Virus record (IMG/VR): IMGVR_UViG_3300023174_000045
Coordinates: 1-64,000 of that record
DNA length: 64,000 nt
Strand: one strand, 5' to 3'
The notes beneath the pieces were generated by a model that worked only from the letters and a program-made list of their open reading frames with translations, searched no databases and was not told the DNA's origin. Both the position numbers and the translations under genes were made by a program. This document shows, one piece after another, positions 1,709 to 30,377 of the stretch (the first letter of the stretch is position 1; each line of letters starts with the position of its first letter).

Positions 1709-2695
1709 ATGCTTGACATCCTTGCTTACCTACCTGCAAAAAAGAAACCCACACCTTCGGGTTGGTTGAGTTTCAATGCGGTATGCTGTCAACACAATGG
1801 CAGCACACGAGACACACGTGGCCGTGGTGGACTCAAAGCCAGTGAAGCTGGTTGGAGTTATCACTGTTTCAATTGCAGTTACACAGCCAGTTTTATCCTA
1901 GGTCGTACTGTAAGTTACAAAGCTCGAAAACTATTAGGTTGGATGGGTGTTCCAGAAGCCGAAATAGAAATGTTGAATCTAGAAAGCCTGCGGCATCGTA
2001 GCATACATGGCATCTTGGAAGATCGACAACAAACATGGAATATACTAAATGATATTTCTTTTGAAGAACGAGACTTGCCACCATATGCTGAGTTGTTGAT
2101 GCCCGAGCATGAAACATATTGGGAATACGTGCGTAGAAGACATATACCCGAAGACTTTCCTGCCATGGTGCAGATAGAAAATGACGGGGTACATTGGATT
2201 AGACCGCACGTGGTAATACCATTCACACACAATGACAAGATTGTGGGATATACCTGTAGATTTTTAGATAACCGGCAGCCCAAGTTCATCAGCGACAGTC
2301 AACCAGGATATGTGTTTGGCATAGACTTGCAACACTCAGACTGGCAGCACATGATAGTTGTGGAAGGCATATTCGATGCTCTCAGTATTGGTGGTGTGGC
2401 TGTGATGCACAACACTGTCAGCGATGCACAAGCTAGATTGATACGCAGTCTTGGTCGAGAAATAACTGTAGTACCAGACCAAGATCGGGCAGGCGTTGAA
2501 TTAATTGACCGAGCGGTGGAACTGGGCTGGGCAGTGAGCATACCAGACTGGCCTGAAGGCTGCAAAGATGTCAACGATGCTGTGATAAAGTTGGGACGAT
2601 TGGCCACCTTGCTAACTATAATGCAATCAAGAGAGACCAGTAAAATCAAAATAGAGTTAAGGAAGAAAGCACTTGTTAAAAGAATACGGACTTGA
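1709..2695 (+). CDS. DNA primase (T4 gp61/DnaG-like)
   Basis: N-terminal Zn-binding Cys motifs (CC...HCFNC), TOPRIM motifs VEGIFD and PDQD, adjacent to helicase. Confidence 0.9.
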   Translation: MLDILAYLPAKKKPTPSGWLSFNAVCCQHNGSTRDTRGRGGLKASEAGWSYHCFNCSYTASFILGRTVSYKARKLLGWMGVPEAEIEMLNLESLRHRSIHGILEDRQQTWNILNDISFEERDLPPYAELLMPEHETYWEYVRRRHIPEDFPAMVQIENDGVHWIRPHVVIPFTHNDKIVGYTCRFLDNRQPKFISDSQPGYVFGIDLQHSDWQHMIVVEGIFDALSIGGVAVMHNTVSDAQARLIRSLGREITVVPDQDRAGVELIDRAVELGWAVSIPDWPEGCKDVNDAVIKLGRLATLLTIMQSRETSKIKIELRKKALVKRIRT

Positions 2696-4091
2696 CGTTC
2701 AACGATTATTTTTAGAAATGATGTTGGAAGACGCACAAAGCTACGTGCGTGTGCAGAACATCTACAACCCGCAGAACTTTGACAAGAGTTTGCGATCAGC
2801 GGCTGAGTTCATCAAAGAACATTCTGACAAGCACAAGACCTTGCCTGACCGTATGCAAATTAGTGCCACCACAGGCATAAAATTACAAGCGGTGCCCGAC
2901 TTGAACGAAGGTCACTTTGACTGGTTCATGGGCGAGTTTGAACAGTTTACCAAACGACAAGAACTTGAACGTGCTATTTTAAAAGCCGCAGACATGCTGG
3001 AAAAGGGTGACTTTGAACCCGTAGAAAAGTTAATTAAAGATGCTGTGCAAATATCATTGACCAAAGACATGGGCACAGATTACTTTGCTGATCCCAAGGC
3101 ACGTATTGAAAAATACTTTAACTCAGGTGGACAAGTATCAACAGGCTGGCCACAGCTGGACAGATTGTTGTATGGTGGATTCAGTCGCGGTGAACTCAAC
3201 ATCTTTGCTGGTGGATCAGGGTCGGGTAAGTCACTGGTTATGATGAACATTGCCTTGAACTGGCTGCAACAGGGCTTGAGCGGTGTATACATTACGCTGG
3301 AGTTGAGTGAAGAACTCACAAGTTTGCGTACAGATGCCATGCTCACAAACATGAGCACAAAAGATATTCGCAAGGACATTGACACCACAGAACTCAAAGT
3401 CAAATTGGTGGCCAAGAAGAGCGGCAACTATCAAGTCAAAGGCTTGCCAGCACAAAGCAACATCAACGACATACGTGCATACTTGAAAGAGTATCAAATA
3501 CAAACAGGCAAGCGTGTGGATTTTGTGATGATTGATTATTTGGACTTGTTGATGCCGGTCAGTGCAAAAGTTTCACCCAATGATTTGTTTGTCAAAGACA
3601 AGTATGTGAGTGAAGAACTTCGCAACTTGGCCAAAGAACTGGGATTCTTGATGGTCACAGCATCACAGTTGAACCGAAGTGCTGTGGAAGAAATTGAATT
3701 TGATCACAGTCATATTTCAGGTGGCATATCTAAAATCAACACAGCAGATAACGTGTTTGGTATCTTTACAAGCCGTGCCATGAAAGAGCGTGGCAAGTAT
3801 CAGATACAGTGTATGAAGTCTCGAAGCTCGACCGGCGTTGGTCAAAAAATTGATTTGGAGTACAACATTGAAACCATGCGCATTACTGACGAAGGCGGAG
3901 AAGATGGAGACACTTATTCAAAGAAACCATCTGCATCAATCATGGACTCAATCAAAGCCCGCAGCCAAGTTAGCCCGGCTAGTGATGACGCAAACAGCCC
4001 TCCATGGGACAGTGCGGAACCTGCCAAAGTCACAGCAGATGTTCAAAGCGCCAAACTAAAACAACTGCTGGGCAAGATCAAAACTGGATAA
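2673..4091 (+). CDS. replicative DNA helicase (T4 gp41/DnaB family)
   Basis: Walker A GGSGSGKS, YITLE, Walker B IDYLD, TASQLNR. Confidence 0.93.
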   Translation: MLKEYGLDVQRLFLEMMLEDAQSYVRVQNIYNPQNFDKSLRSAAEFIKEHSDKHKTLPDRMQISATTGIKLQAVPDLNEGHFDWFMGEFEQFTKRQELERAILKAADMLEKGDFEPVEKLIKDAVQISLTKDMGTDYFADPKARIEKYFNSGGQVSTGWPQLDRLLYGGFSRGELNIFAGGSGSGKSLVMMNIALNWLQQGLSGVYITLELSEELTSLRTDAMLTNMSTKDIRKDIDTTELKVKLVAKKSGNYQVKGLPAQSNINDIRAYLKEYQIQTGKRVDFVMIDYLDLLMPVSAKVSPNDLFVKDKYVSEELRNLAKELGFLMVTASQLNRSAVEEIEFDHSHISGGISKINTADNVFGIFTSRAMKERGKYQIQCMKSRSSTGVGQKIDLEYNIETMRITDEGGEDGDTYSKKPSASIMDSIKARSQVSPASDDANSPPWDSAEPAKVTADVQSAKLKQLLGKIKTG

Positions 4092-5083
4092 TGAATAATT
4101 GTATTGATGCTTTTAAAAGTTTAAATGTTGTAGACTACAACGGTTCTATTCTTGTATCACCTTGTTGTATATCTCCGCCAGTTGAATTTAAAAAAACGAT
4201 AGATTTTAAAAATGTTCAATATTTAAAAAACATTAGAGATTCATGGAGCGAGGGAATTTCTCCTGAACCATGCAGTGCCTGTAAATCGGCCGAGTCCACA
4301 GGGATCAGCAGTCGTCGATTAGGTGCCAACCAATGGTATCAAGACAACGGATATGACAATAACGATGTTGAATTAGTGCGATTTGATTATTGGGTTGGTG
4401 ACACATGTAATTTACGTTGCACAATATGTTTGCCTGAATTCAGCAGTGCTTGGAAACAAGAATTAGGTGTTTCGCCTAAACTTAAGAAATCTGTTGTAAA
4501 TCATTTTTGGGAAACAATGGATTTATCAACATTAAAATGGGTGCATTTCAATGGTGGCGAACCGTTGTTGAGTAAAACGCATGTGGAATTTTTACAAGCT
4601 CTGCCCAGCAAACATCAGATACACATCAATTACAATACCAATGCAACCATACTGCCAGATCAAACATTGTTAGATCTGTGGCAGCAGTTTAAATTGGTAC
4701 AACTGGATTTTAGTATCGACGATGTTGAACATCGATTTGAATATCAACGATACCCAGCCAATTGGAATCAAGTAACAAATAATTTGCAATGGTACATCGA
4801 TCAAGCCCCACACAACTGTATGTTTGCAGTTAATACATCGGTGGGAATTTTAAATCATGCAAACTTAGACAATTTAAATAAGTGGTTAACACAAAATTTC
4901 TATGTGTCTAGATTTACTGATCCTATAGAACATAGACAACAGTTGACACAAGGAACATTTGCATTGGCTGGTGCTAAACAAAAAACAAAACAAATCAAAC
5001 GATTTTTAGATGCCTGCGACCTACGTCGCGGCACAGACTGGCGTACAACTTTTCCAGAATTAACTTGGATAGATCATGACTAG
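4091..5083 (+). CDS. radical SAM protein with N-terminal SPASM/twitch-like Cys domain
   Basis: CNLRCTIC (CX3CX2C), GGEP motif, N-terminal PCC...CxxC. Start re-assigned to the ATG overlapping the helicase stop. Confidence 0.88.
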   Translation: MNNCIDAFKSLNVVDYNGSILVSPCCISPPVEFKKTIDFKNVQYLKNIRDSWSEGISPEPCSACKSAESTGISSRRLGANQWYQDNGYDNNDVELVRFDYWVGDTCNLRCTICLPEFSSAWKQELGVSPKLKKSVVNHFWETMDLSTLKWVHFNGGEPLLSKTHVEFLQALPSKHQIHINYNTNATILPDQTLLDLWQQFKLVQLDFSIDDVEHRFEYQRYPANWNQVTNNLQWYIDQAPHNCMFAVNTSVGILNHANLDNLNKWLTQNFYVSRFTDPIEHRQQLTQGTFALAGAKQKTKQIKRFLDACDLRRGTDWRTTFPELTWIDHD

Positions 5084-6152
5084 AATTGTTTCAAATTGGC
5101 GAATCAATACAAAAAATACCAAACTTGAACATATTGATCAATTTCAGCCCGGCGATATTTTTTTTGTTCCCGGCTATGTTCCGCCGTTGGTGCTAAAACA
5201 TTGGATACAAGTGTATGGTACCCCAGATTTTATTGTTTGTGATCATGCAGGCGAAGTCAATATAGATGGTTTAAAAATTTATTCAGCGCCGTTGAGGGGG
5301 TTAGCATACGCATTTGAAAAATTTGAAAAATTTAACCAAGTAGATTTGCCAAGAGAAGTAAACACAAAATTTTGTTTTAATTTTTTTATCAACAACAGCA
5401 TGGGACGAACAAACAGGCATGTGTTGCTTAAATTAGTTGAATATTTTAAACTTGAATGCTTTGACTACATTTTAAATGATACTGCAAAGTATCATGACAT
5501 GCAGTATGTAATCAATGAATTAAATGCCATTGCCAATGATAAATTTTCAGCTGACTTTAGGAATAAATTGTTAGCACCAGCAACGCTGGCCACAAAACAC
5601 AACAAAAACTTTTCTCATGATCCATTTGACGAATTGTCATCGTATAAAAGTCATATATGGAAAGATGATGTCGAATTAATTTTTAATAATAGTGCAGTAT
5701 CTTTGGTCAGTGAGTTTTGGTATGGATGGCAATTGGCGTCAGTTTTTAGTGAAAAAACTATACTTGCAATAATGGGGCTGACTTTTCCTATTTTTGTAGG
5801 GGGATACGGACATGCAAATTGTCTCAAACAAGCAGGATTAGATGTATTTGATGATGTGATTGATCACAGTTATCAATATCGTACAACTTTGATAGAACAA
5901 TGCTTTTACGCCTTCAAGGATAATTTGCACATTTTAACTGATTTGCAATTGGCTAAAAATTTGAGAGAGACACATTTAAACCGATTGTTAAAAAATCGAG
6001 ATCTGTTGTACGAACATATTTTGACCAAACATGTTTATAATGTTGTAGATACTTGGCCTGAACCGTTACGATCATCTATTAACTCTTACTGGTACTTTAT
6101 ACAAAATTTGCAAGTTGGCAAAGTTATGAGACAAGATTTTTACGCAGATTAA
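5076..6152 (+). CDS. putative glycosyltransferase-like protein
   Basis: C-terminal SEKT...FPIFVGG...GLDVFDDVIDHSY motif shared with ORF 43330-44565; AT-rich insert. Confidence 0.45.
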   Translation: MTRIVSNWRINTKNTKLEHIDQFQPGDIFFVPGYVPPLVLKHWIQVYGTPDFIVCDHAGEVNIDGLKIYSAPLRGLAYAFEKFEKFNQVDLPREVNTKFCFNFFINNSMGRTNRHVLLKLVEYFKLECFDYILNDTAKYHDMQYVINELNAIANDKFSADFRNKLLAPATLATKHNKNFSHDPFDELSSYKSHIWKDDVELIFNNSAVSLVSEFWYGWQLASVFSEKTILAIMGLTFPIFVGGYGHANCLKQAGLDVFDDVIDHSYQYRTTLIEQCFYAFKDNLHILTDLQLAKNLRETHLNRLLKNRDLLYEHILTKHVYNVVDTWPEPLRSSINSYWYFIQNLQVGKVMRQDFYAD

Positions 6153-7348
6153 GACGCAGTGGTCACAGCAGTCCAGGTAGTTGATCCATTGGTATTGACG
6201 TACATGCGATTGTTTGTTGTGGTTCCATCTGTACGCAAATACAAACTTCCTTGTGCTGCACTCAATGTTGGCGCACCAGATCCAAAGAACACGCCAAGAT
6301 TGGTAGTACTAGAAAATTTGTAACCAGCACCAGCAGTTCCGCCAGCAGGCACAGCAGTTCCGCTTAATATTGCGGCAGTGCCTGCAGACAATACGTTACC
6401 ACCAGTGATGTTGCCCGATACCGATACTGTGGTACCTGTGTGTGTGGTGGCATTGACATTGGCTCCACCTAGAACATTACCACCAGTGATGTTGCCTGTT
6501 GTAGAGAATGAAGAGGCAATCAATGTACCAATGATATTACCGCCAGTGATGTTGCCCGTGGCACTGATCAACCCTGGTGTATGTAAATTACCGCCGGTGA
6601 CATTGCCGGTGACGTTGAGAGCCGAAACAACATTGGAACTCAAACTCAGTCCAGCTGCGTTTAAGTTACCTGCTGTGATATTACCAGTATAGCTGAGGTT
6701 GCCAGAAGTAGAAACATTTCCGGCCACAGACAAATTGCCCAACATGGTCACATCATTGGTGTAATAACTCAGAGGACGATTCAAATCAAACATGGTGATA
6801 TTACTGCCGCCAGTGGTGGTCAAAAACCCAAATTCATATGTGCCAGCTTGAGCAAATGTGATCACATTGCTGGAAAAACCTTGAATGCCAGTGATGCCGT
6901 TGCTGACTGCCAAGGGCAAGGCCATGGTGCGTCCAGCTTGGTCCACAGTGATTTGAGTGCGTACCATGCCTGCTGTGCCCGCTGTAGGCCAAGTGTTGGA
7001 ATCAAATCCCAGGCTGATGTTGCCGGCCATGTAAATGCTTTGATAATGCCCTGCATTGCAATCTATGTTGATGGTGCCCGAAGTGTTGGCAATGGCCACT
7101 GTGGTGCCAGAAAATCCGCGGATTTGTGCATTGTAAATTACATTGTTGGCCAAGTTGTTGTCCAATGTAGTACCGGTCAATGCAGCCTTTAACAGGGCTT
7201 TGCTTTGTAGGTCAGTTATTTCATCGGCTGCGTATTGAAAATTTGTTTTTGTATTGGTAAAATTATCACGCATGCCTTGGGTGTTATTGCTCACGCCTGC
7301 AATAGGGTAGTTTCCGTCAATGTCGTTGGGGTTAATCTGGCTGGTCAT
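6149..7348 (-). CDS. tail fibre / tail-associated structural protein
   Basis: Repeated GNITGGN motifs; TAAATA plus SD (AAGGAA) upstream. Confidence 0.7.
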   Translation of the reverse strand: MTSQINPNDIDGNYPIAGVSNNTQGMRDNFTNTKTNFQYAADEITDLQSKALLKAALTGTTLDNNLANNVIYNAQIRGFSGTTVAIANTSGTINIDCNAGHYQSIYMAGNISLGFDSNTWPTAGTAGMVRTQITVDQAGRTMALPLAVSNGITGIQGFSSNVITFAQAGTYEFGFLTTTGGSNITMFDLNRPLSYYTNDVTMLGNLSVAGNVSTSGNLSYTGNITAGNLNAAGLSLSSNVVSALNVTGNVTGGNLHTPGLISATGNITGGNIIGTLIASSFSTTGNITGGNVLGGANVNATTHTGTTVSVSGNITGGNVLSAGTAAILSGTAVPAGGTAGAGYKFSSTTNLGVFFGSGAPTLSAAQGSLYLRTDGTTTNNRMYVNTNGSTTWTAVTTAS

Positions 7349-7417
7349 ACTGGTTCCTTGTATTAGATATTTATTGTAACTGCGTTTCCGCTAAATAATC
7401 CAAAGGCCCTTGAGCAA

Positions 7418-7666
7418 ATGCAAAAGAAGACTAAAAGTATATTAGAAGAACTGGACAGTTTGTACATAGAACGCGATCGCCAGTCGGTGATCGAAACTCG
7501 TGCCAGTAATTTGATTGAAACAGCCATTCGTTTGATGGAACAAATCGACGCTGAGTACAGCCCTGAGCAAGCAGAAAATCTGCAACGCAAACTGCTGAAT
7601 GCTATCAAACATCGTGACACCGGCAAATTCTCAAGGTCTGTAAGGAGAACTCATGCAGATCTTTGA
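7418..7666 (+). CDS. hypothetical protein (head gene region)
   Basis: TAAATA upstream; helical 82-aa ORF coupled to next gene. Confidence 0.7.
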   Translation: MQKKTKSILEELDSLYIERDRQSVIETRASNLIETAIRLMEQIDAEYSPEQAENLQRKLLNAIKHRDTGKFSRSVRRTHADL

Positions 7667-8702
7667 AATCACACAACCTAGAAAAAAATTAGATGAGATA
7701 GACTTTGGTGCTGTCAAAGCACCTGCGGCCCGGGGTGTTGCTGCGGCTGGAGGATTTGCTTCAGCACTGGGCAAGGCCATAACTAATGCACCACTCAAAG
7801 CACTGGGAGCAAAAACTGGCGCTGATTTAGTGCCTGATCCCGATGCGGGCAAAAGCCGCGCATCCGTTGCTGCCAGAATGGATGCAGCAACCAAGGCTGC
7901 CATGCCGGTAATCACTCAACAGGCTGATCAACAACAAAAGATGTGGGCAGCCAGTGTAGCTAACATGATGAAAAAAGCCGGCGTGACCACGATGACCGAG
8001 CTAGATCCTGCTCAACTGCGCGAACCATTGATGAAACAAATTGAGACCATGGGCAAACCTTATGGACTCAGCAACTATAAAAATCTACCCAATGCAGTTG
8101 ACCCAGAAAGTTTTGGCGGTGCAGGCAAAGAAGAAGCCATGAACACAGTCGAAGCCATTGACGCTGCCATTGCGGCAATCCTGAGTCCAGATCCAAAACA
8201 ACAAACCGGTGCTCAAGCAAGAAACAACTGGATCAATTTATCCAAAGAAATTTACGCAGCCGGTCAACAGGCTCAATTTAGAGAGAAAAGTTATGCTTCA
8301 GGTCATGACCTTGCTGCACCTGAAGTTGTGGATGGATTAGCCCAGAGGCTTGACGCTGCTGGGCTGACGGCTGGCAAATTACGCTTGCCATCTGGAGTGG
8401 TTCGCCCCACCGGCGATCCGCGAGTTAACAACTTTTTGTCAGCTCTGGGATTGATTCCCAAAGCAGTCACACCTGCACCTGCGCCAAAGACAGCACCAGT
8501 TGCTGTCCCAGCACCAGTCACAGCTGAAGCGGTTGGTACTGGAATCAATGTGGCAGCGCTGGCACAAAAAGCCGCCAGCGCCAAGCTCACAGCACAAGCA
8601 TTGGGCTTGCCATCAGGCAAAGTGGCGTTGACCAATGATCCCAATATAAATGCTTTGCTTCAGGCAGTTGGCCTTGTTCCAATGCAAGCAGGCGCCAAAT
8701 GA
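7653..8702 (+). CDS. Ala-rich putative internal head protein with duplicated C-terminal module
   Basis: N-terminus MQIFEI...LDE; two copies of an LTAxxLxLPSG...TxDPxxNxxLxAxGL motif. Confidence 0.6.
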   Translation: MQIFEITQPRKKLDEIDFGAVKAPAARGVAAAGGFASALGKAITNAPLKALGAKTGADLVPDPDAGKSRASVAARMDAATKAAMPVITQQADQQQKMWAASVANMMKKAGVTTMTELDPAQLREPLMKQIETMGKPYGLSNYKNLPNAVDPESFGGAGKEEAMNTVEAIDAAIAAILSPDPKQQTGAQARNNWINLSKEIYAAGQQAQFREKSYASGHDLAAPEVVDGLAQRLDAAGLTAGKLRLPSGVVRPTGDPRVNNFLSALGLIPKAVTPAPAPKTAPVAVPAPVTAEAVGTGINVAALAQKAASAKLTAQALGLPSGKVALTNDPNINALLQAVGLVPMQAGAK

Positions 8703-10621
8703 AAAGTCTACGCACACTCTTAGAAGGCGGCAATGTATTCAAAGATGCCGAAGGCCAACCACTCACAGGTCGTATCAATCAAAGCGATGTGCCTGCCACT
8801 GTGGCCTGGATTGAACAACTCACAGGCTTGCAATTCCCACGTGAACGTTGGCTGGGTAGCACAGGCAAAGCACCCACATCAGGCGACATGGATCTTGCTG
8901 TGGACACCAGTGAGATGACCAAGGACCAATTGGCCGCAAAACTCATGTCATGGATTGCCAGTCACAAACTGCCTCCTGCAGAGTGGATCAAAAAGGGCGG
9001 CGAAGTACACCTGCGCACACCCATACAGGGACGTCCTGAACTGGGCTATGTGCAAACAGACTTCATGTTCTTCCCTAACTTAGATTGGGGCACATTCTTC
9101 TACTCAGGTGGCGAAGGTTCAGCATACAAAGGCATGAACCGCAATGTGTTGATGAGCAGTATTGCCAAACAACTGGGACTCAAAGTGGGGGCCAATGGCA
9201 TGTTCAGTCGTGCCACAAATCAGTTAGTGGATGGTGGCATGGATCCAGACTATGTGGCACAGGTGTTATTGGGTCGTGAACGCACAAGAAAAGATCTCAA
9301 AAACGTAGAAAGCATTTTTGCTGCCTTGGCCAAAGACAAAGACAAAGAAGCCAAGGTCAAGGACTTTCGTGACTACTTGAACAAAGAAGGCCTGCAACAA
9401 CCAGACGCTGTGAAAGAAGATACAGACACTTATTTCTTGGCACGACTGCGTGATAGAATTGTGAACCAAGGCATGCAACCGCTGGTAGAACGTGAAACGG
9501 CCAATCCGTATCAAATCTACGAAGCTGAAGAAGCTGGAGTGGGTGGCAAGGCCAAGGGCATTGAACACCTGGAAGATTATGTTTTTCGCAATGGCTTGCC
9601 AGGTGTTACCAAAGCCTTGCAAATTGTGGCAGCGGCAGCTGATGCTCCTGCCAAGACCACCACAGTAAAATGGGACGGCAAACCTGCTGTGATATTTGGA
9701 CGCAAGCCTGACACCGGTGAGTTTGTGCTCACAGACGGATCTGGATTTGAAGCCAAGGGCTATGACGGCTTGGCAACAAGTCCACGCATGATGGCTGACA
9801 TACAGCGTACACGTTCAGGCGCTAGAGACGAGCTAATTCAATTGTATGCTGATCTGTGGCCCAAGCTGGAAGCAGCCACCCCACAAAACTTTCGTGGCTA
9901 CGTCAAAGGCGACTTGCTGTACATGTCAACACCGCCACTGGAAGCTGGCAACTATGTGTTCAAACCCAACACAGTGCAGTACAGAATCCCGGCCAAGACT
10001 TCCTTGGGTCAACGTATAGGTGCCAGTGACACAGGTATTGCCATGCATTCCATGTACGCAGATGCAGGTGATTCACGCCAGCCACTGAGTGGTGTGCGCT
10101 TCAATGACGTACCTGGTTTGTTGTTGATTGAACCCATTGGCGGCAAGGAAATTGTACCTGATGCCAACTTGATCAAGCAAATCAAATCTGTGGCCAATAG
10201 CCCAGATGGTCGTGCCATGGCCACACTGTTCAACCCTGCAGAACTGCGAGCACAACAAATCACAGATCTAGCAAAACTGTGTGTGGACTACATCAACTAC
10301 AGAATCAAAACCAGTGGCAACTTTGACAACTTGTTGCCAGGGTTTGGCGACTGGTTGCAAACCAAAGTCACTCCCAAGAAATTTGGCAACATTGTAGAAT
10401 ACTTGAACAGTCCAGCCAGCAACACAGGTGCGCTGTCAGCGGCATTTACCCTGTTCTTGCTGTTGCACGATTTAAAGCTGGACATACTGCGCCAGTTGGA
10501 TTTGAAGGATCCAGGGCACGAAGGCTGGGTCATGGCCACTGATTCGGGCTATGCCAAAGCTGTGAATAGATTTGATTTTACAGCAAGAAATGCAGCCCAA
10601 AACAATCCGCAACAGGCGTAA
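8699..10621 (+). CDS. fusion of Pol-beta-type nucleotidyltransferase-like domain and ATP-dependent ligase-like (KxDG) domain
   Basis: GSTGK..SGDMDLAVD and VQTD in N-half; KWDG, GDLL, EGWV, KAVNR in C-half. Confidence 0.55.
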   Translation: MKSLRTLLEGGNVFKDAEGQPLTGRINQSDVPATVAWIEQLTGLQFPRERWLGSTGKAPTSGDMDLAVDTSEMTKDQLAAKLMSWIASHKLPPAEWIKKGGEVHLRTPIQGRPELGYVQTDFMFFPNLDWGTFFYSGGEGSAYKGMNRNVLMSSIAKQLGLKVGANGMFSRATNQLVDGGMDPDYVAQVLLGRERTRKDLKNVESIFAALAKDKDKEAKVKDFRDYLNKEGLQQPDAVKEDTDTYFLARLRDRIVNQGMQPLVERETANPYQIYEAEEAGVGGKAKGIEHLEDYVFRNGLPGVTKALQIVAAAADAPAKTTTVKWDGKPAVIFGRKPDTGEFVLTDGSGFEAKGYDGLATSPRMMADIQRTRSGARDELIQLYADLWPKLEAATPQNFRGYVKGDLLYMSTPPLEAGNYVFKPNTVQYRIPAKTSLGQRIGASDTGIAMHSMYADAGDSRQPLSGVRFNDVPGLLLIEPIGGKEIVPDANLIKQIKSVANSPDGRAMATLFNPAELRAQQITDLAKLCVDYINYRIKTSGNFDNLLPGFGDWLQTKVTPKKFGNIVEYLNSPASNTGALSAAFTLFLLLHDLKLDILRQLDLKDPGHEGWVMATDSGYAKAVNRFDFTARNAAQNNPQQA

Positions 10622-10634
10622 TTTTTACCGATTG

Positions 10635-10642
10635 TATAAATA
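10635..10642 (+). promoter_or_regulatory. T4-like late promoter TATAAATA
   Basis: Exact T4 late consensus upstream of a structural gene; TAAATA core recurs before many genes in the window. Confidence 0.75.
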
Positions 10643-10685
10643 AAAGCAGGTCCACCGAGACCACTTAACTTTAAAGGAAAAAATC

Positions 10686-11126
10686 ATGGCACAGTTTACA
10701 AAAGTAAATGGAACTACACAACCAGTATTTGCACTGGATGTTGCAAACGGTTCAATCGCAGGTACAGCTAACGTTGCGGCCCAAGGCCCAGTGATGCTGT
10801 CTGGTCCAAAACTGGACTTCTTCTTATTGACAGCCAACGGCGCTCTTACCAATGCTGGTAACGTCAACGGTTACTTGAACAATGTGATCCAGGCTGTTCA
10901 GTCTGGTGCAGGCATTACAGGTGGCGGTGCAGGCGGTACAGTTGCTTTCTATCAAGCAGGCGCAACAGCCGGCACAATCAACTTGGCTATCTATCCAAGT
11001 GGTGCTTACACCACAGCTACTTTGGTTGCTGCTGCTCAAACAGCCAATGCCACAGGTGGTTTGAACATTGGTATCCCAACTGGTAACGTCAGCAATGCTG
11101 CCACATTCACCAGCTTGGTCAGCTAA
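10686..11126 (+). CDS. probable abundant virion protein (head decoration-like)
   Basis: Ala/Gly/Thr-rich 146 aa, own late promoter, SD and terminator. Confidence 0.6.
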   Translation: MAQFTKVNGTTQPVFALDVANGSIAGTANVAAQGPVMLSGPKLDFFLLTANGALTNAGNVNGYLNNVIQAVQSGAGITGGGAGGTVAFYQAGATAGTINLAIYPSGAYTTATLVAAAQTANATGGLNIGIPTGNVSNAATFTSLVS

Positions 11127-11145
11127 TAACTAGATAGTTGAACTC

Positions 11146-11179
11146 AACCCTGGACGTAAAAAATCCAGGGTTTCTTTTT
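11146..11179 (+). terminator. intrinsic terminator
   Basis: AACCCTGGA/TCCAGGGTT stem followed by T-run. Confidence 0.8.
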
Positions 11180-11198
11180 GGCATTAAATATGCACATA

Positions 11199-11642
11199 AT
11201 GAAAGTCATGTGCCGCACCCTTTTTGATTGTACCCATACTGGTGTCACAGGACATTTTCGTCCCCAACAACTACCTTACACCACCAAGTCGGGTGTGAGA
11301 CTTGAAACTCCTGAACACTGGAATCTAGCTAGAAACCAACAACGCAACTGGGAGAGCATATTGCAAATCATCAGTTTGCGAACACAACCCATGAATGTGG
11401 TATTGCCCAAAAAACAACCAGACGGCTGGCACTTTGAATTTGAAGTAGAAGCCGAAGGCGTACTCAGCAGTAACATTGACAGTGACGACCTAGCAGGACT
11501 TGTGGCCGACTGCGAAGGTGTGCCCATGGTCACGGGCCTGGGCGAACTCACCCTTGATACTGCCACACTGCATGCTCAAGGCACAGATCAAAACATTTGG
11601 TTTACTGCCATAAATAAGCCATTGGAGCCCCACAATGGTTGA
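11199..11642 (+). CDS. hypothetical protein
   Basis: ORF; TAAATA 8 nt before ATG. Confidence 0.7.
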   Translation: MKVMCRTLFDCTHTGVTGHFRPQQLPYTTKSGVRLETPEHWNLARNQQRNWESILQIISLRTQPMNVVLPKKQPDGWHFEFEVEAEGVLSSNIDSDDLAGLVADCEGVPMVTGLGELTLDTATLHAQGTDQNIWFTAINKPLEPHNG

Positions 11643-11901
11643 TACCACTGACATCGAAAAGAAAAGCCTTGAAGCTCACGTTGAACTGTGTGCAGAACGT
11701 TACCGCATGCTGGAACTCAAAGTAGAAACAGTAGAAAAAGAAATTTCAGAAGTCAAAAGCATGGTCTCAGACGTACATGGTATTGTGCGCAACATGGGCG
11801 AAAAACGCAACGACCAACTGATTGCCTGGGGTATAGGCATCATAGGTACATTGCTGGCCGTGGTTGGTTGGCTCACAGCCCACTACATCAAGACATTATG
11901 A
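11635..11901 (+). CDS. small coiled-coil protein with C-terminal transmembrane helix (holin-like topology possible)
   Basis: Heptad N-terminus, hydrophobic LIAWGIGIIGTLLAVVGWL. Confidence 0.6.
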   Translation: MVDTTDIEKKSLEAHVELCAERYRMLELKVETVEKEISEVKSMVSDVHGIVRNMGEKRNDQLIAWGIGIIGTLLAVVGWLTAHYIKTL

Positions 11902-12353
11902 CCCGTGATCAAAAATTAGAACGATTTGCCGAGCGTGAACTCAAACGTGTGTACACCGAACTCATCATCGATGACGAGCAAGGTGGGTACGTTGCGTTTG
12001 GACGTTATCATGTAAAACCACAGCCTGCAGGATTTGCTGTGTATTATCACAGTGACGATCTTGTGAGCACATTCAGCAGTAAAAAAACTGCAATGAGCTG
12101 GTGTGTAGCAGATCATTTGCAACAGCATAAATTAGCACAAAACATTCGCATATTAGATAACAAAAAACAAACACTCACTGCTGACATCCATTGCCGTCGT
12201 GGACAAGCAGATCGTAGCACAAAACCTGAATTCCGAGAAATGGTGCGTACAAAACTTGCACCCAAAATTGAGAACCTTACACTGCTGAATCAAGAACTTG
12301 AAAAATGTTTAAATTCGGCTAAATATCTACAACTAAGAGGATTTGCCAAATGA
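11898..12353 (+). CDS. hypothetical protein
   Basis: ATGA overlap with upstream stop. Confidence 0.7.
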   Translation: MTRDQKLERFAERELKRVYTELIIDDEQGGYVAFGRYHVKPQPAGFAVYYHSDDLVSTFSSKKTAMSWCVADHLQQHKLAQNIRILDNKKQTLTADIHCRRGQADRSTKPEFREMVRTKLAPKIENLTLLNQELEKCLNSAKYLQLRGFAK

Positions 12354-13264
12354 AATTAACCGAACTGGCCACACCAAAAAAGAGCCGCCAAGTAACCCAA
12401 GTATTTGAAAGTTACTTTGGTACTAAGATGCCTGTGAACAAGCTCACAGTGCGCGAAGCACAGGCCATGCTGAAACGTGTGCGTGGTGTGATTGCTGAAC
12501 ATCAGCGTAGCCCCAGCCGTCATACCAGTGAGCGCAATCCTGCGTATCTCAAATTGGTCATGATGGAACAAGCACTTGCTCACCGCGTGAGTGAAGACAT
12601 GGTTCCATCTACCACTCCCGCCCCTGGCGCTCAACAAAACACTGCTGCCAATGCAGCCTCAGTGATTGCAACAACAAAAGATCCTGAACTCAAAGCAGCA
12701 TTACAAAAATCTGCCAAAGGTCAGTCATTGAATCCTGATGAACAAAAACTTGTTGCTGGTGCTGCCTTGATGAAGACTGAAGCACGTTTGCGCAATGCAT
12801 ACCGTGTGTTGAGAGAATCAGAAGTACAACAAGCTCAAGTTGTTTTGGCTGCGCAAGACATGGTAGACAAAATGCAATCAATGTTGGAAGACACCACAGA
12901 GATGCAATTCAAAGAACTGCCTGCATTAGTAGATTCAATTCGCAATCAAATTGGTATTGAACAAGCCACACAATTCAACAGTGATGTCACTGCGGCATTG
13001 CAAGGTCTTGTGCAAAATTTGCAAGGTTCCAAACAACAACTGGAAACAGCACTGGGTGTTGTAACAGGCCAACCTGCACCACTTGACGCCAGCATGGCGG
13101 CCAGTGGCATGCCAGGTGCTGCCCCTGCTCCAGTACCTGGTGCTGAAGCTGGTGCTGAAATGGGCGCCGAAGTTGGTGCTGACGTTGGCGCAGACATTGG
13201 TGCTGAAATAGGTGCCGAAGAACCTGCACCAGCAGGAGCCGCGTTGGGCCGAGCACGTAGATAA
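12350..13264 (+). CDS. putative prohead core/scaffold-like protein
   Basis: Helical, internal LxE sites, acidic Ala/Gly/Glu-rich tail, TAAATA upstream. Confidence 0.5.
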   Translation: MKLTELATPKKSRQVTQVFESYFGTKMPVNKLTVREAQAMLKRVRGVIAEHQRSPSRHTSERNPAYLKLVMMEQALAHRVSEDMVPSTTPAPGAQQNTAANAASVIATTKDPELKAALQKSAKGQSLNPDEQKLVAGAALMKTEARLRNAYRVLRESEVQQAQVVLAAQDMVDKMQSMLEDTTEMQFKELPALVDSIRNQIGIEQATQFNSDVTAALQGLVQNLQGSKQQLETALGVVTGQPAPLDASMAASGMPGAAPAPVPGAEAGAEMGAEVGADVGADIGAEIGAEEPAPAGAALGRARR

Positions 13265-13617
13265 TGAGAATCGACGAAGTCGAAAACTCAAATTCACTAG
13301 ATCCAAATAAGTTAATGGGTCTGGTGAATTTTCTTTCTGGCAGAGCCGATGACGAAAACGCACAAAAACAAATCAGCACCGACGCATTCATATCAACTGC
13401 TCAAAGTCTAGGATTCCCGGTCAACCAACGAAACGTAGTGAGTGTGGTAAGCCAGTCTCCACTGGATTCAGTATTAGAGCCAATTGACCCAAACAACCCT
13501 GGTGTGATCATGTACAAAGGCGCCAACACTGGTGCGACCCAAATGCCTGTAAACAAGGCGCAAGACATTGTGGCCGCCTCGGCCAAACAAGCTGCCGGCA
13601 AAGACCGCGGCGTATAA
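13264..13617 (+). CDS. hypothetical protein (head region)
   Basis: Translationally coupled ORF beginning MRIDEV. Confidence 0.65.
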   Translation: MRIDEVENSNSLDPNKLMGLVNFLSGRADDENAQKQISTDAFISTAQSLGFPVNQRNVVSVVSQSPLDSVLEPIDPNNPGVIMYKGANTGATQMPVNKAQDIVAASAKQAAGKDRGV

Positions 13618-13672
13618 CCATTCTCATTGACATCTATCAGTAAATACGCTATAATCAGCGAAGGAATATCAC

Positions 13673-14044
13673 ATGGCCTATTCAGAAAAAGTAATTGATC
13701 ACTATGAAAATCCACGCAACGTGGGCAAATTTGAAATCGATGACACCATTGGTACAGGCATGGTAGGAGCACCAGCCTGTGGTGATGTGATGAAATTGCA
13801 AATCAAAGTCGAAAACGGAGTTATAACCGATGCCAGGTTCAAAACATACGGATGCGGAAGTGCCATTGCCTCATCCTCTCTTGTTACCGAGTGGGTTAAA
13901 GGACGAACGCTTGACGAGGCCGCAGCTCTTAAAAATTCAGAGATTGCTCAAGAACTCGCATTGCCACCAGTCAAGATTCATTGTTCTATTCTTGCTGAAG
14001 ATGCTATAAAAGCCGCAGTGGAAGATTATCGAAAGAAACACTAA
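13673..14044 (+). CDS. iscU: Fe-S cluster scaffold protein IscU
   Basis: MAYSEKVIDHYENPRNVG, GAPACGD, GCGSAIASSS, LPPVKIHCS. Confidence 0.95.
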   Translation: MAYSEKVIDHYENPRNVGKFEIDDTIGTGMVGAPACGDVMKLQIKVENGVITDARFKTYGCGSAIASSSLVTEWVKGRTLDEAAALKNSEIAQELALPPVKIHCSILAEDAIKAAVEDYRKKH

Positions 14045-14047
14045 TTC

Positions 14048-15745
14048 ATGGTGGATCACCGATTTCGCATATTGATCTATCATGCTGGCGGTGCAAACTC
14101 TTGGTTATATCCGGCAGTATTGCATTTAAAAACATATATTGATGTAACTTATCCTGAGCTGGCCGATCAACTTGAATGGTTAATTCCTATTCAACAAACA
14201 ATGACCAACTCAGAATTGTTGGACTATATCCATCAACATGAACCAGATGCGCTTTGCACCAGTCATTACATATGGAATCATGAATATCTAATCAATCAAC
14301 TTAGTCAAATTAGATCACAGTTGCCTGAACACATCAAAGTCATTGCTGGTGGCCCTAGCATCGACGTCAATCTTGACCCAGACTTCTTCAGCAAACATTC
14401 TTATATTGATTACGCTGTATACGGCGCAGGTGAACATGCATTTGCAGACATTATCAAAAGTTTAGTTAATAAAACACCATTGGTTGCATTTAATACATCC
14501 AATTGTGGTTGGATCAATCACAAAACTGGCTTTCCTATTGTGGCAGAGTACAAATTTGTAAAAATGATCAGCACCAGTCCCTTTACTCACAATCGAGAAT
14601 TATTTGCCGAAATGACTCGTACTTTGCTGGAACGCAATGGATCATTGCACTTGCCTTATACGTTGACCAGGGGGTGTCCGTACTCGTGTACCTTTTGTGA
14701 TTGGAACAGTGGGTTAGGAAACAAACTGTCAAGACGAAAAAATACCTATCAAGAAGAAATTGATTTGTTTCACGAATTAGGTATCAAACAAATTTATTTG
14801 TCTGACGCCAATGTTGGACAGTATGATGAAGATGTTGCTATGATAGAATATTTTGCACAAAAAAATCTGCAACACAATGCTGGATTCAAAATCAGCGGCA
14901 ACTATAGCAAACTGCGCAAAGATGTGAATTTAAAAATCTTCAACATCATGGCCGAAAGTGGATTGGTGAAAAAAACATTGAATTTTTCCATACAAGATAC
15001 CAACGAACAGATATTAAAAAATATCGATCGGCCAGATGTTGGATGGGAGACTCACGCTGCCATGGCCAACGAGCTTGTGACCAAGCATCCGCAATTGACT
15101 GTAAAAGCACAATTGATTTATGGCTTGCCTGGACAAACGCCGTCGACCTGGCGGCACACACTGCGCCAGGTCACTGAGGAAAACATACTGCCTATTGTGT
15201 TTTTAAATGAACCATTGCCGGCCAGCCCTGCCATGTACGATCCCGAATACCAACGTCAATTTCAATTTGAGTACGTAAAGTCCACACGTATTACGTATGA
15301 TACTGATTTTTATATTAGTGAAATTCCAAAAAAATGTATATCTTTTGATCAACGACAATTGGTAGAAATGACAGTGTTATCTGGAGTCTACTATGCCTTG
15401 AGTACAATAAAGTTTTTAATGATTCGACAGGCAGAGTTACATATAAACATCGAACCAATAGTTGATAATTTTTTAATCAGTTCTCAATATCACGATTCTT
15501 GTGAAAATCTTTACACCAACTGGTCTACTAAACAAAAATTCTATTTTACAAGAAATTTTTCGGGTAATCCTGTTATGTTATCTTGTGATCCTATGTCATA
15601 TGGTAGTGCGTTAGTTGTTGACAATAATTTCATTGCGTACATTGCAAAATTGCTGCCACACGATGTATCAAAAAAACTCATGCAATTAACACTGCAAGAT
15701 AATCTTAAAGATATTGTGGCCAACTTGTCCAGCGAAATTGATTAG
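14048..15745 (+). CDS. cobalamin-binding radical SAM protein (class B methyltransferase-like)
   Basis: N-terminal B12-binding-like region (IAGGP, GAGE), TRGCPYSCTFC, LIYGLPGQT. Confidence 0.8.
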   Translation: MVDHRFRILIYHAGGANSWLYPAVLHLKTYIDVTYPELADQLEWLIPIQQTMTNSELLDYIHQHEPDALCTSHYIWNHEYLINQLSQIRSQLPEHIKVIAGGPSIDVNLDPDFFSKHSYIDYAVYGAGEHAFADIIKSLVNKTPLVAFNTSNCGWINHKTGFPIVAEYKFVKMISTSPFTHNRELFAEMTRTLLERNGSLHLPYTLTRGCPYSCTFCDWNSGLGNKLSRRKNTYQEEIDLFHELGIKQIYLSDANVGQYDEDVAMIEYFAQKNLQHNAGFKISGNYSKLRKDVNLKIFNIMAESGLVKKTLNFSIQDTNEQILKNIDRPDVGWETHAAMANELVTKHPQLTVKAQLIYGLPGQTPSTWRHTLRQVTEENILPIVFLNEPLPASPAMYDPEYQRQFQFEYVKSTRITYDTDFYISEIPKKCISFDQRQLVEMTVLSGVYYALSTIKFLMIRQAELHINIEPIVDNFLISSQYHDSCENLYTNWSTKQKFYFTRNFSGNPVMLSCDPMSYGSALVVDNNFIAYIAKLLPHDVSKKLMQLTLQDNLKDIVANLSSEID

Positions 15746-16082: not shown

Positions 16083-16799
16083 TTGTATAATCCAAAATTC
16101 AACTATCAACCCATTCCCCGGGAAAACGTCAATGGCCGCAGACTGTATGCCACTCCAGATGGCAACCGGTTGCCATCAGTTACTACAATCTTAGAAGCTA
16201 CCAAAAGCGAGGAAAGCAAAAAGGCCTTGCAGAACTGGCGCAACAGCATTGGTGCTGAAAAAGCACAGGCCATCACAACAGAAGCAGCCAACCGTGGCAC
16301 ACGTATGCACACGTATCTTGAACAGTATGTTCGAGAAGGCGCTATTAAAGAACGTGGTACAAATCCGTTCTCATGGGCCAGTCATGCCATGGCACACAAG
16401 GTTGTGGAGCATGGCTTAAAGAACGTGTCAGAATTCTGGGGTATCGAAGTTCCGTTGTATTTCCCCAAGGTATACGCAGGCACCACAGATGGTGCAGGCA
16501 TACATTTGAATGATCAAGCCATCTTGGACTACAAGCAAACCAACAAGCCCAAAAAACGTGAGTGGATTGATGACTACTTTGTGCAGTTGTGCGCCTATGC
16601 AGAAGCACACAACGAACTGCATGGTACAAAGATCAAAAAAGGCGTAGTTTTGATGTGTGTCAAGCCCACACTAGATGCGCAAATGAACATGGTCACGCAG
16701 CCAGAATATCAGGAATTTGTGCTAGAAGGTCGGGAGTTTGAAAAGTATCGCAACTTGTGGTGGAAAAAGGTCGAACAGTATTACTTGCTAAATATGTGA
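16083..16799 (+). CDS. PD-(D/E)XK exonuclease
   Basis: LPSVTTIL, GTRMH, GTTD...DYK motifs. Confidence 0.8.
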   Translation: MYNPKFNYQPIPRENVNGRRLYATPDGNRLPSVTTILEATKSEESKKALQNWRNSIGAEKAQAITTEAANRGTRMHTYLEQYVREGAIKERGTNPFSWASHAMAHKVVEHGLKNVSEFWGIEVPLYFPKVYAGTTDGAGIHLNDQAILDYKQTNKPKKREWIDDYFVQLCAYAEAHNELHGTKIKKGVVLMCVKPTLDAQMNMVTQPEYQEFVLEGREFEKYRNLWWKKVEQYYLLNM

Positions 16800-29000: not shown

Positions 29001-30377
29001 ATGCATGACATCGATTTCACACACAAACAATTCAACGGTATTCCTGTGGCGGCTGATTGGATAAGAGATCTTGAAAGTTCTGACAGCCGCCTGCACAAGG
29101 AAAAGGTGATTGAAAAAGCCTTGATGGCCTCAAAGTTGGGCAGTGCCAATGCACAGTGTTTCTTGTTCAACTGCTACCAAGCATACAATCCTTTCTACAC
29201 ATTCCATGTCAAACAAGTGCCTGAGAGCAGTGGCATTGAACACGCACCCAATCCTTGGCCTGTGTTTTGGGGCTTGCTGGAAGGCCTGCGCACAAGAACA
29301 TTCACTGGACATCGTGCCAGAGATGCTATTGTGGAATGCATGAAGCAGTTTGACAGTTTAGAGTGGAACAATCTCTGCAGACGTGTTATCACCAAAGACC
29401 TGAGATGCGGCATCAGTGAGAAAACACTGAACAAAGTACTAGGTAACACAGAGTGGAAGATTCCTGTGTTTACTTGCCAACTGGCACAAGATTCTACAGA
29501 CCAACCAAAGAAACTCAAAGGCATTAAACGCCTAGAGTGCAAACTGGATGGTGTGCGTGTGTTGGCAGTGGTGCAAGGCACAGATGTCACGCTGTACAGT
29601 CGCAATGGCAAACAGTTTGAAAACTTTCCGCAGATTGTGCAAGCCATTGAAGACAATCGCAAGGCATTGGGCGTACCAAACCACACCAGCTATAGTTTTG
29701 TGCTAGATGGCGAGATTGTGGGCGAGAGTTTCCAGAAGCTGATGAAACAAGCACACCGCAAATCGGATGCTGTCACAGACGGCATGGTGTATCACGTGTT
29801 TGATATCATACCGTTTGACAGTTTTATCGAAGGTCACTACAACGCACAACAACACAAACGCATTGAAATGTTGGAACGTGTACGTGCCAAATTGCCTGCG
29901 GATGGTCCCATCCAAATCATGAACGGACTTGAAGTGGACCTGGACACAGCCCAAGGACATGACATCATGCAACGCTATGCCGAAGCCGCTGTGGAAGGTG
30001 GCTTTGAAGGCATCATGATCAAGAGCATGGACGCACCCTATTTGTGCAAACGCACTGATTACTGGATGAAATGGAAACCCACAATCACAGTTGACCTGAG
30101 CATTGTGGGATTTGAAGAAGGTACTGGTCGCAATCTAAACCGACTGGGTGCTATAATCTGTGAAGGAGATGACAATGGACGACATATACGAGTCAATGTT
30201 GGTAGTGGTTTGTCTGATAGCGATCGTGATGAGTATTGGCACAGCAGGGACACTCTTCTTGGTCACTTGGTGGAAGTGCAAGCTGATGCAGTTACGCAAA
30301 ACCAAGACGGATCATACAGCCTGAGATTCCCAAGATTTTTACGTTTCAGAGATTTTGAAGCCGGCGAAAAAGTATGA
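29001..30377 (+). CDS. ATP-dependent DNA ligase
   Basis: KLDG, DGE, EGIMIK, KWKP, VGSG, SLRFPRF. Confidence 0.93.
   Translation: MHDIDFTHKQFNGIPVAADWIRDLESSDSRLHKEKVIEKALMASKLGSANAQCFLFNCYQAYNPFYTFHVKQVPESSGIEHAPNPWPVFWGLLEGLRTRTFTGHRARDAIVECMKQFDSLEWNNLCRRVITKDLRCGISEKTLNKVLGNTEWKIPVFTCQLAQDSTDQPKKLKGIKRLECKLDGVRVLAVVQGTDVTLYSRNGKQFENFPQIVQAIEDNRKALGVPNHTSYSFVLDGEIVGESFQKLMKQAHRKSDAVTDGMVYHVFDIIPFDSFIEGHYNAQQHKRIEMLERVRAKLPADGPIQIMNGLEVDLDTAQGHDIMQRYAEAAVEGGFEGIMIKSMDAPYLCKRTDYWMKWKPTITVDLSIVGFEEGTGRNLNRLGAIICEGDDNGRHIRVNVGSGLSDSDRDEYWHSRDTLLGHLVEVQADAVTQNQDGSYSLRFPRFLRFRDFEAGEKV

Follow-up and report, generated by a model that had tools for sequence, protein, structure and literature searches.

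Which activity is carried by a phage protein that joins two different nucleotidyltransferase-like domains in one chain, and on which substrate would it act? This question is raised by an open reading frame (ORF) at positions 8699..10621 (+) of the window, by which we mean the whole stretch of 64,000 nucleotides analysed here, i.e. the first 64 kb of the 225-kb IMG/VR virus record IMGVR_UViG_3300023174_000045, whose completeness is estimated at 65%. The ORF encodes 640 amino acids plus a stop, exactly as claimed in an earlier interpretation made from the letters alone (hereafter, the sequence-only reading), and its product consists of a family X polymerase (Pol X)-like domain, a linker and a DUF6267 ligase-like domain. 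The fusion of a Pol-beta-superfamily nucleotidyltransferase to a ligase-type lysine nucleotidyltransferase, which that reading had proposed, was borne out by the match of AlphaFold models to both folds and by the conservation of the catalytic residues. We favour, with a probability of roughly 0.55, a fill-and-seal enzyme with two activities that acts on nucleic acid with nicks or gaps, probably DNA.

The ORF, called with genetic code 11 only, is full length and undamaged in more than 100 relatives of 86-96% identity, which were gathered by a word search with a length window of 0.55-1.75x. Near-identical proteins are encoded on metagenome contigs of up to 356 kb, indicating that the gene belongs to a jumbo phage. 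The sole family matches of the protein are Pfam DUF6267 (PF19782) and PHROG 455 (function unknown); the former spans residues 288-631 with 94.7 bits (E 1e-26) against a curated cut-off of 27 bits, and the protein is thus a member of DUF6267. No Pfam or NCBIfam model matched residues 1 to ca. 280, an NCBIfam scan of the fusion protein gave nothing, and PDB sequence searches with the whole protein and with both domain profiles retrieved no meaningful match. An exhaustive search of representatives collected 1379 clusters (50% identity, E<=1e-3), with at least 600 loci in IMG/VR and 220 records among isolate phages, ca. 197 of them from cyanophages. The family is essentially phage-only: on the cellular side, 185,579 species genomes contributed 14 contigs, all from metagenome bins. 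The best DUF6267 matches in these bins (58-69% identity; loci L115-L119) come from Haliscomenobacter, Flavobacterium, other Bacteroidota and Terrimicrobiaceae, which is a weak hint to the host range of the phage clade, or else reflects mis-binned phage contigs.

Folds and conserved residues of the two domains

The N-terminal domain (N domain; residues 1-235, 8699..9403, +) gave a confident AlphaFold model, with a predicted local distance difference test score (pLDDT) of 90.4. Foldseek comparison of this model with the PDB yielded 167 matches at E<=1e-3, and the best 50 of the 167 were all Pol lambda, beta or mu, or Thermus PolX. Likewise, a BFVD search retrieved uncharacterised phage proteins followed by giant-virus family X polymerases and the entomopoxvirus protein Q9YVX5, with E values of 7e-5 to 5e-4 for these viral family X folds. 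The palm superposes and is of the Pol beta type, with a G-S loop, a D-x-D motif and a third Asp on the next-but-one strand, and it is directly followed by a thumb subdomain, the part that binds the nascent base pair. The domain is only ca. 235 amino acids long, its alignments begin at Pol beta residue 103-142, with nothing preceding the palm. As modelled, it is the palm and thumb of a family X polymerase in minimal format, without the 8-kDa domain and without full fingers.

The Pol beta signature pointed out in the sequence-only reading corresponds to G53-S54-x8-D63-M-D65 and T120-D121, whose catalytic positions are 98-100% conserved in an alignment of 60 homologues (G53, D63 and D121, 98%; D65, 100%), with G56, S61 and G62 also highly conserved. 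The stretch G53-S-x8-D63-M-D65 (8855..8893, +) holds the Gly/Ser predicted to bind the triphosphate and the palm's two metal-binding Asp, and the strand V118-Q-T-D121-F-M-F (9050..9070, +) the third catalytic Asp together with Q119 (98%). The stretch G-S-x8-S-G-D-M-D closely resembles the palm loop of Pol beta, which ends in S-G-D-M-D. Pfam searches at E<=10 linked two of the 60 homologues weakly to DNA_pol_B_palm (PF14792; E 0.002, below the cut-off), the only family matched by more than one of them at E<0.01. The window protein itself matched neither PF14792 nor PF14791, and a PDB profile search with the N domain returned no polymerase.

The C-terminal domain (C domain; residues 286-640, 9554..10618, +) corresponds to DUF6267 and was modelled with very high confidence (pLDDT 94.6) as a ligase-type lysine nucleotidyltransferase without an OB domain. 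It has the covalent-nucleotidyltransferase fold: in a VIA search the best 34 rows were all ligases, capping enzymes or proteins of the same fold, and Foldseek matches, although weak (best E 7e-3), were DNA or RNA ligases in ca. 45 of 50 rows. Motif I (K324-W-D-G ... G334-R335; 9668..9703, +) contains the predicted nucleotidyl-lysine, and is followed by a motif III-like G404-D405-L-L-Y (9908..9922, +) and by a motif IIIa-like F421-x-P-N ... Y428 (9959..9982, +) that provides aromatic residues. Motifs IV (E608-G-W-V) and V (K620-x-V-x-R624-x-x-F627) form a beta-hairpin (10520..10579, +; model strands 334-339 and 342-346) and thus lie on adjacent strands. The only extra module is an all-helical insert of ca. 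115 residues (residues ca. 489-603, 10163..10507, +), apparent from the secondary structure of the model, which separates motifs IIIa and IV and carries an invariant lysine, K593. Nothing follows motif V in the model, and therefore there is no OB domain.

Conservation agrees with this assignment. The five motifs are collinear and invariant among 68 C-domain homologues, all of which match DUF6267, and E292, D293, K324, D326, G327, G334, D405, Y428, H450, K593, E608, G609, R624 and F627 are 100% conserved, with K620 at 99% and R335 and F421 at 96%; motif IV varies as E-G-[YW]-V. The four 'covalent NTase' motifs listed from the sequence (KWDG, GDLL, EGWV and KAV) all fall on conserved columns of this alignment. 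In Pfam searches at E<=10, none of the 68 homologues matched a ligase family, including PF09511 and PF09414. Neither the window protein nor its homologues matched PF01068, PF04679 or PF14743, and we found no C-terminal OB domain with a motif VI.

Linkage of the domains and gene order in phages

To describe architectures, the best 150 of the 1379 representative clusters were cut into domains with phmmer. This sample comprised 43 proteins with the order N-C, five with C-N, 53 with the C domain only, 37 with the N domain only and 12 fragments, such that ca. 48 of the 150 carry both domains in one chain, in either order. When split, the domains are encoded by adjacent genes, N then C (L014, L018). 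Fusion in both orders and adjacency when separate indicate that the two halves are independent modules held together by evolution.

The relatives also show other partners. Either domain is repeatedly fused, in the metagenomic proteins P0140, P0145, P0146, P0237 and P0256 and in further clusters, to an NMN adenylyltransferase (NMNAT)-like nucleotidyltransferase with a HIGH motif, and additional fusions involve HAD/NT5C-like, Cu/Zn superoxide dismutase (a cluster of 65 members), ART-PolyVal, Amidoligase_2 and DUF5661 domains. P0256, from contig L101, combines cytidylyltransferase-like, ART-PolyVal and Pol X-like domains in a single protein, and a CCA-adding/poly(A)-polymerase family enzyme is encoded near its gene (L101 1199-2527, -). 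Links of such fusions to NAD+ coupling or to oxidative damage are guesses.

The gene order around the fusion gene is constant in 22 related IMG/VR loci. It runs from a structural-like ORF through primase, DnaB, variable genes, the small gene w7418 and sometimes an Ala-rich ORF to the Pol X-ligase gene, and continues with six small conserved genes of unknown function, IscU, sometimes a radical-SAM gene, a PD-(D/E)XK exonuclease, a pectate-lyase-like tailspike and ribonucleotide reductase (RNR). In the window itself, neighbouring genes with an assigned identity encode primase, DnaB, radical-SAM enzymes, IscU, an exonuclease, RNR and a canonical DNA ligase. The primase (1709-2695) and the DnaB-like helicase (2673-4091) form a conserved upstream anchor (1709..4091, +), and the exonuclease (16083..16799, +; 40% identical to gp240 of phage PA5oct) a downstream one. 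The gene w7418 (7418..7666, +; 82 amino acids) travels with the module, being present in 22 of the 22 loci. The Ala-rich ORF (7653..8702, +), whose stop overlaps the start of the fusion gene, is variable and no conserved partner: it has weak matches (27-32% identity) in six of the 22 loci and is absent from several. A promoter and terminator scan of positions 7000-14200 gave results near chance, with nothing informative for the fusion gene.

The phage also encodes a canonical ATP-dependent DNA ligase of 458 amino acids (29001..30377, +; PF01068, E 1.7e-21), 18 kb downstream of the fusion. The fusion as the phage's only ligase is thereby ruled out, and it would be a second, specialised one. No NAD+ ligase and no Rnl1- or Rnl2-type RNA ligase was found in the available record, which is 65% complete.

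A comparable arrangement occurs in distant jumbo phages. The order primase, DnaB, w7418-like gene, Pol X/ligase and exonuclease, with other genes in between, is shared by the 22 loci, PA5oct and Phosso. The PA5oct block includes DnaB (52% identity), the w7418-like gp225, the ligase-like gp228, the Pol X-like gp231, the exonuclease (40% identity) and a tailspike-like N-terminus; that of Phosso contains primase, DnaB, a w7418-like gene, gp446 and the Pol X-like gp447, and that of Atu_ph07 a primase/helicase, a 324-aa protein and a Pol X-like gene. The relationship is remote, since PA5oct gp231 shares 35% identity with the window protein over ca. 105 amino acids, in the N domain only. On the ligase side, the 324-aa protein of Atu_ph07 weakly matches Pfam RNA_ligase (PF09414; E 0.002) and is homologous to Phosso gp446 (E 8e-29), itself a homologue of PA5oct gp228 (E 3e-12); for gp228 there is also a match (E 3e-4) to the DUF6267 profile at its motif IV-V end. 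The patterns EK[LI]DG and [VI]EG[VY]V...K[VI]VDK..F are common to DUF6267 and to these three ligase-like proteins, and hhalign pairs KWDG with EKLDG of the Atu_ph07 protein, in an alignment that is not significant (E 0.043, probability 1.2%). The pairing of Pol X-like and ligase-like genes downstream of primase/helicase in such distant phages points to an old, conserved jumbo-phage module, a pair that the window clade has fused. Two other candidates for the DUF6267 counterpart in PA5oct, gp227 and gp237, were rejected by hhalign, the weak ligase-like match being gp228, and gp230 was rejected as the w7418 homologue, which is gp225.

DUF6267 stands alone in the ca. 197 cyanophage records. We examined six cyanomyoviruses from five genera (P-TIM40, S-RSM4, S-RIM44, Syn1, S-WAM1 and S-RIM8; L002, L003, L103-L106), and in all six the DUF6267 gene lies in the replication module, after the gp41 helicase and MazG. 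The cassette is conserved and consists of gp41, MazG, a small ORF, an unknown ORF (260-500 aa), DUF6267 and a cytidylyltransferase-like gene. No other ligase-type family (PF01068, PF01653, PF09414, PF09511) was detected in any of the six. According to a published remark, quasi-core replication genes of T4, the gp30 ligase among them, are missing from marine cyanophages (PMC2993671), and these two absences together make DUF6267 the obvious candidate for their ligase. The N-domain profile found no N domain in P-TIM40 or S-RSM4. The ORF just upstream of DUF6267 has no detectable family and was considered as a hidden Pol X-like partner, for which BLASTP and hhalign found nothing. The cytidylyltransferase-like partner, found as a fusion with DUF6267 in metagenomic proteins as well, bears a weak resemblance to NMN adenylyltransferases, with scores far under the family cut-offs; as a speculation, it may supply NAD+ to an NAD+-using ligase.

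Several further features of the window deserve mention. Six small genes downstream of the fusion (10686-13617, +) keep their order in nearly all related loci and have no homologue with an annotation; their place is taken in PA5oct by gp232-gp239, the majority of them detected in virions. One of them, the ORF at 12350-13264, ends in a tail of G-A-[ED]-x repeats. The Ala-rich ORF contains, by eye, an internal duplication of ca. 35 residues (L-T-A-x-x-L-x-L-P-S-G-x-V ... N-x-L-L-x-A-x-G-L-[IV]-P), and for both it and ORF 10686-11126 there was neither a phage match nor an informative Atlas neighbour. A perfect sigma-70 consensus (TTGACA, 17 nt, TATAAT; 13627-13655, +) lies directly upstream of the IscU/NifU-like gene (13673-14044), with a B12-binding radical-SAM gene next in line (14048-15745); another gene for a radical-SAM protein is found at 4004-5083. 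The only minus-strand gene of the block (6149-7348, -) has a tail-fibre-like N-terminus and many G-N-[IV]-[TS]-G-G-N repeats, and is variable among relatives (50-61% identity), missing at some loci. Between the genes for the large (18997-21312) and small (22226-23326) RNR subunits there is an ORF of 304 amino acids (21315-22229, +) with no Pfam or PHROG match; it is missing from the 22 related loci, which means little given that most of them stop short of this point.

Probable fill-and-seal activity and alternative roles

From the folds, residues, linkage and neighbourhood described above we infer polymerase and ligase activities acting in sequence. The N domain, through the predicted catalytic Asp63, Asp65 and Asp121, would add one or a few nucleotides at the 3'-OH in a short gap; the DUF6267 domain would charge Lys324 with AMP, the presumed donor product, pass it to the 5'-phosphate and then seal the nick, and the helical insert may replace the OB domain as a duplex clamp. 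The substrate would most likely be phage DNA, possibly with ribonucleotide patches. DNA is the likelier choice because the polymerase half resembles templated DNA polymerases and because primase, helicase and exonuclease are neighbours, and RNA or RNA/DNA junctions are possible because the ligase half most resembles nick-sealing RNA ligases. The enzyme might repair single-strand damage, process or mature replication intermediates, or mend damage done by nucleases; phiKMV-like phages were recently reported to tolerate CRISPR and restriction cuts in a ligase-dependent way (bioRxiv 10.64898/2026.09.21.753257).

A number of observations weigh against a fill-and-seal enzyme for DNA. The N domain lacks the 8-kDa deoxyribose-phosphate lyase domain and the helix-hairpin-helix fingers; the C domain lacks the OB domain typical of DNA ligases, its best ligase matches are RNA ligases, and its motif V reads K-x-V-x-R instead of K-x-K. 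No sequence profile ties DUF6267 to known ligase families. A canonical DNA ligase is already encoded by the phage, DUF6267 occurs in the six cyanomyoviruses with no detectable Pol X-like domain as a partner, and its constant NMNAT-like neighbour there is left unexplained by a fill-and-seal scheme. Lastly, fusions with HAD, superoxide dismutase, ART-PolyVal and amidoligase domains could mean other chemistry.

Some of these observations would suit an enzyme of RNA repair or tailing, which would extend damaged RNA at its 3' ends, or add nucleotides in gaps of duplex RNA, and reseal, for instance, tRNA or rRNA cut by host ribonuclease defences, in the manner of the editosome RET2 and REL1 or of T4 Rnl. 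The sequence-only reading had suggested RNA end-healing and sealing; its sealing part finds an echo in the closest ligase folds, which are those of RNA ligases, and in the lack of an OB domain that the C domain shares with them, while end-healing is unsupported, since the protein has no kinase or phosphoesterase domain and the record shows generic P-loop matches only and no clear Pnkp. Also in favour of an RNA substrate, a HAD phosphatase-type domain in some relatives could heal 3'-phosphates, the Atu_ph07 partner gene weakly matches an RNA ligase family, and the phage encodes a separate canonical DNA ligase. However, RNA and DNA ligase matches of the C model differ by only 1-2 Z units, the N domain matches DNA-templated family X polymerases, thumb included, and not terminal uridylyltransferases (TUTases), CCA-adding or poly(A) enzymes, its neighbours are primase, helicase and exonuclease, and in cyanomyoviruses DUF6267 is the only ligase-type gene found, within a DNA replication module. 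We thus consider an RNA repair role unlikely. Far less probable still is small-molecule nucleotide chemistry, concerning NAD+-related or signalling nucleotides, in which both domains would act on mononucleotides or proteins and not on polynucleotide ends. The repeated fusion or adjacency of DUF6267 to the NMNAT-like nucleotidyltransferase would fit such a role, as would the fusions with HAD 5'-nucleotidase-like, ART-PolyVal (an NAD+ user), amidoligase and Cu/Zn superoxide dismutase domains, but the NMNAT-like matches are far below cut-offs and could equally mean that NAD+ is the AMP donor of a ligase. The thumb subdomain and the overall match to templated polymerases, the nick-sealing enzymes that head the ligase-fold matches, and the pairing with primase, helicase and exonuclease likewise argue against it.

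A different question is where the enzyme would act, and packaging in the virion is a claim on location, compatible with either a DNA or an RNA substrate. As an enzyme co-injected with the genome, the protein would work before phage gene expression, resealing or filling incoming DNA or countering host nucleases; we regard this as doubtful. One argument for it comes from PA5oct, where the flag 'structural protein, ESI-MS/MS' (electrospray ionization tandem mass spectrometry) is attached to gp231 and to the majority of genes in the syntenic block gp226-gp241, in a study that linked 93 products to the virion (PMC7318152). Also in its favour are the generic PHROG 'virion structural protein' labels of w7418 (phrog_11854, E 3.5e-15) and of the gene at 12350-13264 (phrog_14154, E 2e-12), the only two such labels, the other flanking ORFs having no match, and the Pol X-like domain that sits together with ART-PolyVal in a multidomain relative, polyvalent proteins, of which ART-PolyVal is a hallmark, being predicted to be delivered with DNA (PMC5512222). 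Nevertheless, the homology to gp231 is distant and confined to the N domain, the ligase-like gp228 is not flagged, the PA5oct study itself lists seven 'virion-unrelated enzymes' among its hits (PMC7318152), and the cyanophage copies of DUF6267 are in the replication module. The gene had been thought to be embedded among head genes, which was not confirmed: no flanking ORF matches a head family, the neighbours that could be identified are those given above, and the surroundings contain no recognised gene for a capsid, portal, MuF or protease protein. Searches of the 225-kb record for T4-type capsid, portal and protease genes were negative, with the record incomplete and two of three controls silent, as was that for an S77 protease, for which the control was silent. 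Nor did the supposed prohead-protease sites stand, because [LI]xE occurs five times in the protein and 4.3 +/- 1.9 times in shuffled sequences, i.e. at chance level. The N-terminal site belongs to L-x-E9-G10-G11-N-x-F-K, a 90-97% conserved and confidently folded part of the polymerase-like domain that is kept even in the 17 of 60 homologues in which this domain is internal, and the VKE and LVE tripeptides sit in the inter-domain linker (residues 236-285, 9404..9553, +), which is poorly conserved and has a pLDDT of 57-67. The protease-site argument for packaging thus fell away, and its support is indirect, coming chiefly from the flag on the distant gp231 and the association with ART-PolyVal.

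A broader version of the fill-and-seal reading, which we put forward tentatively and hold to be clearly less probable than fill-and-seal activity as such, is that DUF6267 might be a new, OB-less and phage-confined family of polynucleotide ligases and the long-missing DNA ligase of marine T4-like cyanophages, perhaps drawing NAD+ through its NMNAT-like partner. In jumbo phages it would be fused to a minimal Pol X as a single-chain machine for gap filling and sealing, perhaps even travelling inside the virion so as to repair the genome on entry.

Comparison with known systems

If DUF6267 is a ligase, it would fill the known gap left by the missing ligase of cyanophages. A polymerase-ligase in one chain, if confirmed, would be a candidate for a compact reagent and a new case of repair encoded by a phage, possibly one that weakens defences based on nucleases, and it would be a functional analogue of LigD or of the Pol X/ligase pair of African swine fever virus (ASFV), built from different parts. 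In a recent review of DNA polymerases in phages, family X is assigned to eukaryotes, bacteria, archaea and ASFV, with no phage example (PMC8775771), and our literature search found no mention of DUF6267, nor of Pol X in jumbo phages or cyanophages.

ASFV offers a parallel for the N domain, because its Pol X likewise has palm and thumb only, without an 8-kDa lyase domain or helix-hairpin-helix fingers. ASFV Pol X and AsfvLIG are a viral pair for base-excision gap filling and sealing, whereas here both predicted activities are in one polypeptide and the host is bacterial. In contrast with AsfvLIG, DUF6267 has neither an OB nor an N-terminal DNA-binding domain, and no detectable sequence kinship to ATP-dependent DNA ligases. 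Other viral family X folds like the N domain, namely those of giant-virus polymerases and of entomopoxvirus Q9YVX5 (603 aa, 'Probable AP endonuclease'), also belong to viruses of eukaryotes. Judged by name and length alone, Q9YVX5 may combine a Pol X fold with a further repair function, but its partner would be an AP endonuclease and not a ligase.

Bacterial LigD, the polymerase-phosphoesterase-ligase fusion of non-homologous end joining, is likewise a single chain with a repair polymerase and a ligase whose domain order varies among lineages, and its optional end-healing module can be compared with the HAD phosphatase-type domain of some relatives of the fusion. The RNA ligases Rnl5 (Naegleria NgrRnl), T4 Rnl2 and trypanosome REL1 differ from DUF6267, none of whose 68 members matches PF09414 and which has a helical insert of ca. 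115 amino acids between motifs IIIa and IV and a K-x-V-x-R motif V. The editosome couples the TUTase RET2 to REL1, while the polymerase partner here resembles a DNA Pol X. Some distant N-domain relatives occur in long chains with ART-PolyVal, HAD, amidoligase and DUF5661 domains, recalling polyvalent proteins (PMC5512222); the window protein, whose domains are just two and match in function, showed no linkage to MuF or portal and so falls outside that class, and the Pol-beta nucleotidyltransferases in the paper on polyvalent proteins are of a different minimal family from firmicute elements (PMC5512222). In all, both halves of the protein come from known superfamilies, and what is new is their arrangement, that is, a minimal Pol X fused to or paired with an OB-less ligase-like domain that carries a helical insert and is unrecognisable by sequence.

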